Shown: piece by piece, positions 1,111 to 6,953 of the stretch | How the letters are laid out: every line of letters starts with the position of its first letter | Numbering within the stretch: the first letter of the stretch is position 1 | Origin: Oopsacas minuta | Lineage: Eukaryota > Animalia > Porifera | Length of the DNA: 64,000 nucleotides | NCBI GenBank assembly: GCA_024704765.1 | Contig: JAKMXF010000111.1 | Location: forward strand, 822,619-886,618 | Direction: 5' to 3' | Translations under genes and position numbers: made by a program | Notes under the pieces: generated by a model | Databases searched by the model: none | What the model saw: the letters and a program-made list of their open reading frames with translations, nothing else | Told to the model about the DNA's origin: nothing

Positions 1111-4100
1111 TTAAACATCAGTAACAGGAGGAATAACTGCTAGTCCAGAGGCTGCTCTGCATGTGTGCATACCGGATACAAACTCCCAAGTATCAGTCCT
1201 AGGGTCGTATATTTCTGCTGTATTGAGGTAAGAAGGGCCGTTAATACCGCCTACAGCGATTAACCGAGACCCTAGCTCTGTGAGACACACGCCATCTCGG
1301 GGTGTTGACATTGGACTGATGGTCGTCCATTTTCCAGCAACAATATCAAAGCATTCCACTGAGCCAAGTCTACAGATACCGTCATTACCTCCAGAAATAT
1401 ATACACGACCTCCTAGCACTGCAACTCCTATTACACAATTGCAAATAAATACAGTAAAAGTGAAATTTAAGCAAATATCCAAACAATGTAGAAATGCAAG
1501 ATTTTATGTATAAAAAATCATAAAAAAAGGGTATTTTTAAGTATACGAGGTATTTAGTTGTATAATCAGTTCTTAACAGTGATAATAATACAAAGCTTAA
1601 ATGTATATAATACACATGGAAAAATTATATCACAACAAAATGAGAGAATTGCCTATTCTATTCTTAGCCCTGACTTGCTATATTGGTGTTCTACAAATGG
1701 GATTTGAGGGCGGTTATGTCTCTCCTACAGCAAACTCTCTCATTAAATACACTCCCTTAACAATCAATATTCTACCCATTTTCGCTGGATTCATATTCCT
1801 AGGTACCTTGGTAATGCTACCTCTACTGAGTTTCACTTCTCAAACAATTAACAGTAAGGCTCTGCTGATAGCGTCAATAGTACCAGGTTGTGTAGGTTGG
1901 TTCACAGTTGTCTTAAGCAATGACGTGTATACAATGTTGCTAGGAAGATTTCTGTTGGGCATACAGTCTTCTATTCTATTCCTTACTAGTATTTACCTTG
2001 GAGAGAGCTCTCCTTCTAACAGACGTAGATTCTATTGCAGTGGAATAGGTCTGTCTACGAGATTCGGTGCAGTTCTGATATATGTACTTGGCATATGGAT
2101 GTCATTTCGTTGGCTGGCAGTGACAGCTATCATCCTGGAATTAATCTTTGTCTGTATGCTGTTATTGAACCCTGTCTCAGCTAACTGGTTAGTGCAACAA
2201 GGATTGGAGGAGAGAGCCAAGAAATCTCTACGATATTTCAACGGAAATGGTTTCGATTCTGACAGTGAAATTTTCAACATGAAACAAAACAACATTACGA
2301 AACTATCTGTTAGAGAGAAAATAGGTCAACTATCTAAATGGAGAGTAGTTAAACCTATTCTCATCATTACTACACTCAATAATTTCAAACCCCTGAGTGG
2401 TTACCCATTTATCATTACATTCTCATCTCAAATTCTCTCCAAGCAACGAGGACTCCCTCCTAACATTGCAGCTCTCGTCCTTCCAATTATGATTCTGATC
2501 GGGAATATTTTAGGTCAACAAATTGTTTCTCATTTCAATCTTAAGAAAATACTCATATCTACAACTGTACTACTCTTATTATCTCATTTATCAATGACAA
2601 TATACTTTGCAATAGCTGACTATATGATGAATTGTTCTATCCATGATGATGTTGATGGCAGTTCTTTCTGTTATACTTCTAGTTTCTGGCCTATCCTCAG
2701 CACGGCCCTTTATGGTATTAGTTATGGTATGGGACTAGATTCTGTTAGTTATGCACTTGTTGGTGAGGCATTTGACGCTAACAACAGAGAACTCTCAATC
2801 TGTATTTTGCATACAGTAGGAACACTTATATCAATAATAGTGATTGTATTATTCCAATATATCTTCACGTATGTAGGAGGAACGCTTACATTTGGTATAT
2901 TCGCTCTATTCGTCATTTCTGCTCTGCCCTTTGAATACTATCTAATTAATTATTAATTCATTATATAAGCTGCTCGTATAAATGCTCTATTATGTGTATG
3001 TTGATATTCTATTGTTAGCTACCGTAAACTGGGGCTACTTTGGCCCACGGGGTTTGCTTTAGCCCAAATATTGAATTTCTTACTTATTGAATAGATATTT
3101 ATTTGCTTTCGAAATTGTCTACCGATATTTGAAAATTCGTTAAAAATTTGTCAAGTCATTTTCAAGTATAATGCTGAATCCAATCTAGTTTCTTTGGAGC
3201 TTGATATTTTGGGCTAATGCAAACCCGGTGGGCCAAAATAGCCCCAGTTTATGGTATCTATTTTCTACCTCGGTAAATGGGGAATTCTATGAAAATTCTT
3301 CTTGAATAATCGTTTTTGTGCTAAATTTGGAAAAAACACGTATTTACGCTATGATGAATTAAAATTTTTGGGTTTCTGAGAAGAAAATTTCTTAAAAATT
3401 GGTATAATCACCCAACAGCCTTAGAGAACATTATTTTAATCAAATATGATTGAAATAACTGTCGTTGTGGAAGTGACTATACTTATTCACTCAAAAAGCT
3501 CTGGTTAAAGGACATTTACATTTGAAATTATAAATAGGGATTGGGGGGCTCTCAGGAGATTCGCCGGCCGACCTAACCCACTTATAGAGGTTCTACTGTA
3601 TAGTAAGCTTTCCTTGTGTCAACAAATTTCACATACAACATACACATAATAGAGCATTTATACGAGCAGCTTATATAATGAATTAATAATTAATTAGATA
3701 GTATTCAAAGGGCAGAGCAGAAATGACGAATAGAGCGAATATACCAAATGTAAGCGTTCCTCCTACATACGTGAAGATATATTGGAATAATACAATCACT
3801 ATTATTGATATAAGTGTTCCTACTGTATGCAAAATACAGATTGAGAGTTCTCTGTTGTTAGCGTCAAATGCCTCACCAACAAGTGCATAACTAACAGAAT
3901 CTAGTCCCATACCATAACTAATACCATAAAGGGCCGTGCTGAGGATAGGCCAGAAACTAGAAGTATAACAGAAAGAACTGCCATCAACATCATCATGGAT
4001 AGAACAATTCATCATATAGTCAGCTATTGCAAAGTATATTGTCATTGATAAATGAGATAATAAGAGTAGTACAGTTGTAGATATGAGTATTTTCTTAAGA

Positions 4101-6953
4101 TTGAAATGAGAAACAATTTGTTGACCTAAAATATTCCCGATCAGAATCATAATTGGAAGGACGAGAGCTGCAATGTTAGGAGGGAGTCCTCGTTGCTTGG
4201 AGAGAATTTGAGATGAGAATGTAATGATAAATGGGTAACCACTCAGGGGTTTGAAATTATTGAGTGTAGTAATGATGAGAATAGGTTTAACTACTCTCCA
4301 TTTAGATAGTTGACCTATTTTCTCTCTAACAGATAGTTTCGTAATGTTGTTTTGTTTCATGTTGAAAATTTCACTGTCAGAATCGAAACCATTTCCGTTG
4401 AAATATCGTAGAGATTTCTTGGCTCTCTCCTCCAATCCTTGTTGCACTAACCAGTTAGCTGAGACAGGGTTCAATAACAGCATACAGACAAAGATTAATT
4501 CCAGGATGATAGCTGTCACTGCCAGCCAACGAAATGACATCCATATGCCAAGTACATATATCAGAACTGCACCGAATCTCGTAGACAGACCTATTCCACT
4601 GCAATAGAATCTACGTCTGTTAGAAGGAGAGCTCTCTCCAAGGTAAATACTAGTAAGGAATAGAATAGAAGACTGTATGCCCAACAGAAATCTTCCTAGC
4701 AACATTGTATACACGTCATTGCTTAAGACAACTGTGAACCAACCTACACAACCTGGTACTATTGACGCTATCAGCAGAGCCTTACTGTTAATTGTTTGAG
4801 AAGTGAAACTCAGTAGAGGTAGCATTACCAAGGTACCTAGGAATATGAATCCAGCGAAAATGGGTAGAATATTGATTGTTAAGGGAGTGTATTTAATGAG
4901 AGAGTTTGCTGTAGGAGAGACATAACCGCCCTCAAATCCCATTTGTAGAACACCAATATAGCAAGTCAGGGCTAAGAATAGAATAGGCAATTCTCTCATT
5001 TTTTTGTTTTGAGAATTTTTGTCAAATAAGTACATTTGTATTAAATACTTTCCTAGTATTCATGATCCTGGTTTCATATTCATCAAAAAATACACTACTA
5101 CTATCTTACTATACACGAGGTAGAGCAAGATAACAATTTAAATATTATTCTCTTTATTAATCCGTTAGATAATGAGATAAATAATACATGAACATACCTA
5201 CCTATTCCTGCTCTTGGTTTTGTCATAGGAGCTATAGTATGCCATCTATTTAGATGGGGATCATATGCTTCTACAATATCTAGAAACGCACTCCCATCAT
5301 TTCCTCCAAACACATACAGTCTCTTGCTGTGTACAGCAGCTCCAGGAAAGGAGCGGCGAGAGGACATAGATGCTACCTGGCTCCACAAGTTCATGTCGGG
5401 ATCAAAGCGTTCTACTGTCTGTAGACAGGCCCTGTAATAAATAATATAGAGATAGAGCTTTTAGAATAATATAACGTTGTGTGGATATTGATTGGAAGTG
5501 TATATAGTGGTGTTTGCCTATTAGCAATATTCGCCAAATAGCAAGTTTTTCAGGGACTTAGCCATTTTGTATTGAAATAGGTGATTCCTCTAATAAGTTC
5601 GAATACTAGCAAGGGAAATTCGTTGAAAATAGTTCTCGCTAATAGGCTAACTCCACTGTATATGTACTGACCTGCCATCATAACCTCCTACTGCATACAT
5701 AGCTCCCCCTAGTACCCCTACAGCTACTCCAGATCTGCATGTCTGCATGGGAGAGACGAAAGCCCAGCTGCCTGTATTCGGATCATAACATTCCACAGAG
5801 CTGAGTCTGAGTGATCCATCGGACCCTCCAACAGCTAGAACCTTCCTACCTACCATACCTACGCCTAACTGCTGTCTGCGGACTATCATGTCAGTACTTC
5901 TGCTCCAGCAGTCTTCCAAACAGTTGTAGCTCTCCACTGACCTGGATAGTTTGTAGAAATAAATAATTCTATAACCATGGCAACGACTAGCTTACCTTGT
6001 TATGTGCTCACTGGATTCCTTACCTCCCACTGCCATAAGAGTACCAATAGTAGCATGTCTAGGCACCATCCGAGGAGAGCGACTAGTCGGTTCATGAAAT
6101 AAATCTGGTACGAGTTGAAATCTCTTAGCCTCATCTACTAGGTCTCTACACTCTATACTTTCCCTTACCAATTCCTCCTGGTCAACTCGTGTCATTAGAA
6201 ACTTAGTTTCTAGCAGTGGGAGACGAACAGCTGATAGAAGAGTAGGCAGATTATGCTTCCTCAGATCTGGACTTGAATGTACCCATCGAATTAGCGAGTC
6301 AAACACCACTTCCTCTTTGGGAACATTAAGTTTATCTGAGAAGAGGAGAGAGTTGAGATGTTCAAATGGATGTTTAAGAAATTCCTCATTCTGACAAACC
6401 TCTTGGAAATTTTTCTCAGTAAATCTGTCAATAACCTAATTGATCATATAATATTAAACAATAACGTACAATGTATAAGAATCTATCAAATAGCAATCCT
6501 TACTTCTGTAAGAGAAGAACATCCATACTGTTCAGCAAAACCTCGTATTTCTAAGCAGTTGTGTGGGTCAAGTTGTTCCCGAAGATAATCACAACAAAGA
6601 TTCTGTACAGCATCCATTTGCAGTCGACTAGATGCAGAGAGAAGTTCTAACACGTTATCAGCTGTTAAATCAATGTCACCGGTGTAAGCAAAGTCAATGA
6701 GTCTCCCCAATACACTGGATTCCATCTCCTGTATGAGAATCTTCTCCTCTCTGCTTTCCAACATACCGGTAGAGAACATAGCCTCAAAGTACGAGGAACA
6801 AGCTGCTAGAATAGCTCGGTGTGCACAGATCTCTGTATCTCCAGCTATTAATATGACGTCACATAGCTTCCGGTTGTGTCGAAGAGCGTTTACACGGGCT
6901 AATACAATCTGACTGTGTATCACTAGCGAGTCACTCATACCTGGGCTCTCCAT
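1111..6953 (-). CDS. Kelch-like BTB-BACK-Kelch protein (KLHL8/KLHL20-like), spliced; last intron 1428-5201
   Basis: BTB (CDVILIAGDTEICAHRAILAACSSYF) at 6953-6500, BACK exon, kelch repeats (GG..DG...SVECYDP...W) in ORFs 5647-5937, 5101-5394 and 1111-1482. Donor GTAGGT at 5201 and acceptor AG at 1429-1428 join in frame as ...MTKPRAGI-G-VAVLGGRVY... Confidence 0.9.
1640..2956 (+). CDS. MFS sugar-porter transporter (Tret1/SLC2A8-like), copy A, intronless, 438 aa from MRELP
   Basis: About 12 hydrophobic segments; MLLGRFLLG and YLGESSP..RR sugar-porter motifs. ATG at 1640 is shared with the inverted copy. Confidence 0.85.
   Translation: MRELPILFLALTCYIGVLQMGFEGGYVSPTANSLIKYTPLTINILPIFAGFIFLGTLVMLPLLSFTSQTINSKALLIASIVPGCVGWFTVVLSNDVYTMLLGRFLLGIQSSILFLTSIYLGESSPSNRRRFYCSGIGLSTRFGAVLIYVLGIWMSFRWLAVTAIILELIFVCMLLLNPVSANWLVQQGLEERAKKSLRYFNGNGFDSDSEIFNMKQNNITKLSVREKIGQLSKWRVVKPILIITTLNNFKPLSGYPFIITFSSQILSKQRGLPPNIAALVLPIMILIGNILGQQIVSHFNLKKILISTTVLLLLSHLSMTIYFAIADYMMNCSIHDDVDGSSFCYTSSFWPILSTALYGISYGMGLDSVSYALVGEAFDANNRELSICILHTVGTLISIIVIVLFQYIFTYVGGTLTFGIFALFVISALPFEYYLINY
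3022..3254. mobile_element. MITE (Tc1/mariner-pogo-like, TA-flanked)
   Basis: Imperfect ~50-bp terminal inverted repeats CCGTAAACTGGGGCTACTTTGGCCCAC / GTGGGCCAAAATAGCCCCAGTTTATGG, with TA at 3020-3021 and 3255-3256. Confidence 0.75.
3585..3600 (-). mobile_element. Solo pogo/Tigger-like transposon end
   Basis: Reverse complement reads TA-CAGTAGAACCTC, a Tigger-type terminus. No partner end found in the window. Confidence 0.4.
3683..4999 (-). CDS. MFS sugar-porter transporter, copy B (protein identical to copy A)
   Basis: ORF-track translation is identical to copy A from MRELP to the stop. Confidence 0.85.
   Translation of the reverse strand: MRELPILFLALTCYIGVLQMGFEGGYVSPTANSLIKYTPLTINILPIFAGFIFLGTLVMLPLLSFTSQTINSKALLIASIVPGCVGWFTVVLSNDVYTMLLGRFLLGIQSSILFLTSIYLGESSPSNRRRFYCSGIGLSTRFGAVLIYVLGIWMSFRWLAVTAIILELIFVCMLLLNPVSANWLVQQGLEERAKKSLRYFNGNGFDSDSEIFNMKQNNITKLSVREKIGQLSKWRVVKPILIITTLNNFKPLSGYPFIITFSSQILSKQRGLPPNIAALVLPIMILIGNILGQQIVSHFNLKKILISTTVLLLLSHLSMTIYFAIADYMMNCSIHDDVDGSSFCYTSSFWPILSTALYGISYGMGLDSVSYALVGEAFDANNRELSICILHTVGTLISIIVIVLFQYIFTYVGGTLTFGIFALFVISALPFEYYLINY

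Follow-up and report, generated by a model that had tools for sequence, protein, structure and literature searches.

How can an intron of one gene hold another gene twice, in opposite orientations, without the two copies differing at a single position? The question is raised by a stretch of 64,000 nucleotides (nt) from the glass sponge Oopsacas minuta (assembly GCA_024704765.1, contig JAKMXF010000111.1, positions 822,619 to 886,618 of the forward strand), which as a whole is called the window here and to whose first letter unprefixed positions refer. Within the last intron of a kelch gene, two copies of a transporter gene of the major facilitator superfamily (MFS) form the arms of a palindrome. 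The left arm (1637–3003, plus strand) carries the copy that is antisense to kelch, the right arm (3636–5002, minus strand) carries the copy in kelch orientation, and each is the exact reverse complement of the other. Base-by-base comparison of the arms gives 0 differences over 1367 nt, in agreement with a preliminary description of the window, which had noted no difference between them. The same description attributed identity to either a very recent event or conversion between arms. The evidence favors conversion and speaks against a very recent event, as paralogues that are 11–13% diverged hold pieces of both arms. We consider it probable that the structure is an older gene palindrome, the arms of which have been homogenized by arm-to-arm gene conversion.

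The palindrome is sharply delimited. A repeat search places the arms at 1632–3003 and 3636–5007 (1372 nt), with the sole mismatch at 1636/5003, and similarity between arms breaks off abruptly at all four ends. No other repeat of at least 150 nt is present in the 64-kb window, which excludes chance as the source of the two arms. Each arm extends over the coding sequence, 3 nt upstream, and 47 nt downstream only. Copy A of the MFS sugar-porter open reading frame (ORF) is at 1640–2956 on the plus strand (ATG at 1640 and stop at 2954–2956) and encodes 438 amino acids (aa); copy B is at 3683–4999 on the minus strand (ATG at 4999 and stop at 3683–3685) and encodes an identical product. Both ORFs are intact, consist of a single exon, and converge tail to tail. 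The 5′ flanks of the two copies have no relation to each other and the four junctions are distinct sequences.

The encoded protein matches the Pfam families Sugar_tr (PF00083, 1.8e-24; a score of 86.9 bits against a gathering cut-off of 22.3, spanning profile positions 50–433 of 452) and MFS_1 (1e-16), and the language-model clusters nearest to it are Tret1-like and SLC2-like sugar porters. A transporter name based on solved structures was dropped because there was one weak match only (8pnl, at 9.4e-07). Relatives of the protein in other assemblies are 57–67% identical. Between species, dN/dS of the gene (the ratio of nonsynonymous to synonymous divergence) ranges from 0.18 to 0.31, indicating that it is under purifying selection, and synonymous divergence of O. 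minuta from the others exceeds 1. Two further glass-sponge assemblies have a second conserved MFS paralogue of 409 aa, next to a gene with an Rgp1 domain (L028:6001–7230 and L029:6001–7230).

The host is a BTB-BACK-kelch (KLHL) gene on the minus strand, in which BTB, BACK, and six kelch repeats are found in order when Pfam is applied exon by exon. The intron that contains the palindrome (1428–5201, minus strand) is 3774 nt long, in phase 1, and has AG/GTAGGT and TAATAG/G boundaries. It is the last coding intron, since the kelch ORF stops at 1111–1113, right after the sixth repeat. Reading across the splice yields a normal kelch blade, the exons on both sides have 94–98% protein identity across species, and five other species use the same donor (ATAG/GTAGGTA) and acceptor (YAG/G). 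Between the arms and the splice sites are 199 and 209 nt. The anatomy given in the preliminary description, with two convergent MFS genes in a 3774-nt last kelch intron and about 200 nt to each splice site, is thus right in every detail.

The age of the palindrome can be gauged from three pseudogene paralogues of this segment in the O. minuta genome (L003, C303:471463–475825; L004, C43:818–5179; L005, C303:246093–250404). They are 87–88% identical to the arm and 97–99% identical to each other, and have 16–32 in-frame stops. Each is continuously collinear with 3615–5302 of the window, a stretch that takes in the final 22 nt of the spacer, all of the right arm with its flank, and 100 nt of kelch exon. 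The junctions of spacer with right-arm tail (3614–3636) and of right arm with flank and kelch exon (to 5302) recur in all three. Past the tail of the sense copy, antisense pieces follow in the order 3003–2813, 2776–2752, 2745–2711, and 2702–2533, broken by insertions. Opposite, pieces of the antisense arm (2603/2581–2371 and 2241–2213) are joined directly to kelch position 5302. This arrangement requires a source of the paralogues in which 790 nt or more of the left arm stood beside the right arm. That paralogues carry pieces of both arms means the palindrome predates the split between them and the window locus.

As read from the order of these pieces, the paralogues have the signature of remains of a tandemly duplicated or circularized segment, 2213–5302, with a 2213/5302 junction. 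Circular permutation of that segment by one cut was considered and modified, as the antisense pieces overlap at 2533–2603 and a tandem duplicate fits better. A mobile-element origin of the MFS gene was rejected. The extra copies include a piece of kelch exon along with the flank and are thus segmental duplicates rather than transposed genes. Paralogue L004 also has a microsatellite at ∼3070–3230 and an N at 808.

Substitutions that have accumulated since the paralogues split off are shared between arms. We scored a substitution as derived in the window gene when all three paralogues match at least five of the seven outgroup copies. By this measure, 19 are derived in the window gene and 24 arose on the paralogue side, with 96 that are unpolarized. 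All 19 of the window-derived substitutions are present on both arms. Without homogenization, many tens of differences between arms would be expected, and the number observed is zero.

Orthologous loci in other glass sponges place the nesting of the transporter gene, and its changes in orientation, in a phylogenetic context. In all seven loci of the comparison set, which come from other glass-sponge assemblies (L011, L012, L013, L014, L015, L025, and L030), the MFS gene is in the same kelch intron, and the neighbors are the ryanodine receptor gene (RyR), kelch, and, where called, MsrA beyond kelch. The content of the intron differs among them. L014 has one antisense copy. In L011, one antisense copy is accompanied by a repeat of its tail in inverted orientation (196 nt, 89%), and L012 has one antisense copy and an inverted copy of nt 135–547 (317 nt at 99% and 40 nt at 95%). 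L013 and L025 each have one sense copy. L030 has one sense copy and a direct partial copy of 121 nt (91%; L030:7643–7763) that corresponds to the 5′ end of the sense gene, is located between the gene and the last kelch exon, and looks like a remnant of a tandem duplication. L015, the most distant assembly, has two tandem antisense copies (92–95%) within a tandem direct duplication of ∼3.06 kb (L015:4458–10366; 92–97% identity) and a kelch intron of 7.3 kb. A full inverted copy is absent from all seven introns, with none in L013, L014, L015, L025, and L030 and partial ones of 200–360 nt in L011 and L012.

A tree of host-gene exons from L015, O. minuta, L013, L025, L011, L012, and L014 has the topology (L015,((O. 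minuta,(L013,L025)),(L011,(L012,L014)))), with support of 100/99 for the two main clades. The sister group of O. minuta has the sense copy only, the other clade and the outgroup have antisense copies, and O. minuta has both. Two histories explain this layout. In one, the gene was duplicated in inverted orientation before O. minuta and its sister group separated, and the latter then lost its antisense arm. In the other, the gene was first inverted, and a new inverted duplication arose recently. The event counts of the two models are the same. One apparent trace of a full sense arm was tried and rejected. In L012, the predicted start of a sense arm is 208 nt from the kelch exon, compared with 202 nt in O. 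minuta and 207 nt in L013. A hidden 5′ remnant at that place had 40 of 134 matches in a register test, which is random, and the coincidence was dropped.

We suggest the following sequence of events. A single-exon MFS sugar-porter gene would have become nested in the kelch intron before the sampled glass sponges diverged. In the lineage of O. minuta, this gene would then have been copied in inverted orientation, tail to tail, to yield a palindrome that is considerably older than its zero arm divergence implies. Identity may be kept up by intrachromosomal conversion from arm to arm or, to the same effect, by one arm being copied afresh in full time and again; in either case, the tract would extend no further than the homologous region. 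Functionally, the outcome may simply be that the transporter gene is present twice, once in the orientation of the host gene and once against it. The capacity of the kelch pre-mRNA to form an intronic hairpin of 1367 bp would be a by-product, perhaps tolerated or processed, and no conserved regulatory device. Loss of one or the other arm would provide a simple route to sense versus antisense nested genes among glass sponges.

The spacer spans 3004–3635 (632 nt), is non-palindromic, and all but ∼49 nt of it is accounted for by two dispersed repeats. The first (3016–3260, ∼245 nt) resembles a miniature inverted-repeat transposable element, with 53-nt terminal inverted repeats that are 91% complementary and, by eye, TA at both ends; of 342 genomic candidates, at least 40 were scored as copies, which are spread over many contigs and 87–92% identical. 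The second (3268–3605, ∼335 nt) has 220 candidates, with 40 scored copies at 76–85% identity. As only ∼49 nt of the spacer is non-repeat sequence, the original center of the palindrome was probably short. The repeats are most likely later insertions that would have widened the spacer from ∼50 nt.

Several observations weigh against homogenization of an older palindrome. A signal of GC-biased conversion is missing, in what is a small sample (eight derived changes from A/T to G/C and eight from G/C to A/T), and the GC content at third codon positions of the window gene (0.335) is the lowest among orthologues. The mid antisense piece of the paralogues is 94% identical to the paralogues' own sense copy and 88–90% identical to the window, which implies either that conversion took place inside the paralogue or that the piece originated there later. 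For the tail antisense piece, identity is about the same to that sense copy and to the window (77–78%). This patchy identity itself suggests conversion, and later local events could also account for it. Alignments of the intron flanks (200 nt) to those of other species, both local and global and compared to shuffles, recover only the conserved splice-donor motif. With flanks that cannot be aligned between species, the positional homology of the sense copy of O. minuta and those of L013, L025, and L030 cannot be shown. Polishing by Pilon with reads that map to multiple places could mask a few real differences between arms. Lastly, new duplicates have arisen at this locus lineage by lineage, as in the tandem copies of L015 (92–95%) and the partial tandem copy of L030 (91%), and given this, a young, lineage-specific inverted duplication is not far-fetched.

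Such a duplication is the alternative that survives best, and we regard it as possible, if unlikely. An O. minuta lineage that had the sense copy only would very recently have copied the gene in inverted orientation, 632 nt downstream, and no conversion would be needed. It accounts for 0 differences at 1367 arm positions, it is in line with a sister clade (L013, L025, and L030) that has the sense copy only, and it takes the same number of between-species events as the conversion model. Fresh duplicates in several lineages, including the partial inverted copies of L011 and L012 besides the tandem ones, lend it further plausibility. The paralogues speak against it. Despite a divergence of 11–13%, they have collinear antisense pieces over 2213–3003, on both sides of the sense copy, and these would have to be separate, later events that mimic a palindrome. 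The new copy would, moreover, have landed at the ancestral antisense position, beside the last kelch exon.

The conversion-maintained palindrome that we favor is compatible with a role for the hairpin itself, which the preliminary description had proposed in suggesting that the intron could fold as one duplex. Folding is physically possible. The minimum free energy structure of the 3774-nt intron RNA (kelch strand; −2808.8 kcal/mol) pairs 1367 of 1367 arm positions in register, and single strands of 199 and 209 nt separate the duplex from the splice sites. Double-stranded RNA of the kelch pre-mRNA might then feed Dicer and Argonaute or ADAR and in this way regulate the transporter, or the duplex might aid splicing by drawing donor and acceptor close to each other. 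The genome of O. minuta has genes for such pathways. Each of two Dicer-like ORFs (1562 and 1539 aa) has a pair of RNase III domains, and the Piwi domain of Argonaute/Piwi proteins occurs in no fewer than five full-length ORFs (886–1030 aa). Two ADAR-like loci have a dsRNA-binding domain (dsrm) upstream of an adenosine-deaminase domain (A_deamin), one at C111:926471–928802 (minus strand), ∼40 kb past the end of the window, and one at C343:251080–253155 (plus strand), with two in-frame stops that are possibly introns.

We nonetheless find a functional hairpin improbable. The nesting is shared by all seven orthologous introns, yet the long hairpin is not kept. Five have no inverted copy and two have a partial one, so that both genes are conserved while the hairpin is not, and a long hairpin is not a conserved requirement of either gene. 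Similar hairpin systems include young plant MIRNA genes and pseudogene hairpins of mouse oocytes, and known hairpin loci usually do not have intact genes in both arms. Nor is there an obvious benefit in self-silencing by a duplicate of a gene that is under purifying selection. The closest parallel is that of Drosophila hairpin RNA loci, which produce endogenous small interfering RNAs and arose when their target genes were duplicated in inverted orientation (PMC10317233). Like these, the O. minuta palindrome is an inverted duplicate of a coding gene that could be transcribed as one long hairpin, in a genome with Dicer and Argonaute genes. It differs in that both arms are intact, constrained genes and in that the hairpin would be intronic and the inverted repeat is not conserved in relatives. 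Small RNAs or editing on the arms, if shown, would make this an intact-gene hairpin locus in a sponge.

Just as doubtful is a combined scenario, in which the palindrome would have existed before O. minuta and the sense-only group that is its sister separated, double-stranded RNA of a self-targeting intronic hairpin, formed each time kelch is transcribed, would couple transporter output to the activity of the host gene via RNA interference or editing, and the palindrome would be the intermediate through which nested genes of glass sponges flip orientation in their host introns. If true, at a synonymous divergence above 1, it would be among the longest-lived small gene palindromes known.

The least probable explanation is an error of assembly, in which a fold-back chimera or mis-join of a single MFS copy created the palindrome or polishing made real arms identical. 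The assembly is a hybrid of Illumina and PacBio reads, for which SPAdes, SSPACE (scaffolding), and Pilon (polishing) were used (PMC10280926), and a perfect match over 1.37 kb is what one would expect after collapse or over-polishing. An exact-protein look-up found no independent O. minuta assembly, and a scan of metagenomes found no relatives. An artefact is, as judged from the structure of the locus, very unlikely: the palindrome has defined ends and lies within a 1.9-Mb scaffold, its 632-nt spacer is asymmetric and made of repeat copies, its outer flanks are different, the kelch exons on either side keep an order and orientation that are collinear with seven other glass-sponge assemblies whereas a fold-back chimera would invert everything past its center, two different 5′ flanks abut the same gene end, which is impossible from one copy, the right-arm junctions recur at independent paralogous loci, and partial inverted copies are present in independent, high-coverage assemblies of other species.

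Most known palindromes that are maintained by conversion are those of mammalian sex chromosomes and of organelle genomes. Among these, palindromes P1–P8 of the human Y chromosome and those of the primate and mouse X chromosomes have arms of >99% identity due to arm-to-arm conversion (PMC8600007; PMC8327919; bioRxiv 10.1101/800185; PMC8981503). The locus in O. minuta shares with them the inverted arms, intact coding genes, and unique spacer, an identity above that expected from the age of the structure, and substitutions that have spread to both arms. It differs in scale and setting, with arms of 1.4 kb as opposed to more than 8–10 kb, one coding sequence, and a location inside an intron of another gene. 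It also has no link to sex chromosomes or testis expression, and no GC-biased signature was seen in it. In mechanism, the O. minuta palindrome is a small relative of the mammalian ones and, with arms of 1.37 kb versus at least 8 kb, it is not in their "large palindrome" class.

A second comparison concerns the intronic setting. In the int22h repeats of the human factor VIII gene, the intronless gene F8A lies in a host intron, and inverted copies recombine with it. Both cases have an intronless gene nested in the intron of a host and inverted copies of it. The partner copies of F8 are outside of the gene, and recombination inverts and breaks the host. In O. minuta, both copies are in one intron and exchange between them only flips or homogenizes intronic sequence. 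Nested genes as such are known from glass-sponge genomes. Aphrocallistes vastus has 2432, many of them conserved, and extensive microsynteny with O. minuta (PMC10282587). The MFS gene resembles these in being a single-exon gene that is wholly within a host intron and at a position conserved across hexactinellids. It departs from them in its identical inverted pair and in an orientation and copy number that vary by species. Set beside its decayed copies and the seven related species, the locus in this early-branching animal forms a compact natural series of outcomes, comprising both arms, a single arm, a partial arm, and tandem copies. The series could serve to study the origin, persistence, and loss of inverted duplicates and the ways in which a nested gene may switch orientation while its host stays unharmed.

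The analysis would also correct a public annotation that merges the kelch gene with one of the transporter copies. Record KAI6657512.1, "Kelch-like protein 20 [Oopsacas minuta]" (892 aa; window 3683–6953, minus strand), fuses kelch exons 1–4 (to …PRAGI) to the sense MFS copy from residue 10 on, with an acceptor near 4972, and is without the last kelch exon and hence the last two kelch repeats. The fusion is probably an annotation error that was caused by the sense orientation of the nested copy, since the last kelch exon omitted from it has 89–97% protein identity in other glass sponges. A real kelch–MFS fusion transcript is conceivable.

All coding exons of kelch are on the minus strand. The last (1111–1427) encodes kelch repeats 5 and 6 (Kelch_1, 2.7e-26) and ends with the stop codon. 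The penultimate (5202–5431) encodes kelch repeat 4; its upper boundary was set by eye, and the sequence of the public model passes through it. Upstream exons are within 5672–6953, with BTB at ∼6504–6953, BACK at ∼5996–6435, and kelch repeats 1–3 at ∼5672–5942, these boundaries also being set by eye. Downstream of the kelch stop and on the same strand is another conserved exon (665–859; …PVYEAYYGS.RQKDNAALRDLLCRSAVLRPEDR…ENEWNSTNKLY…), with no Pfam match and no kelch signature. Its protein identity is 69–81% in L013 and L012, and it probably belongs to another gene.

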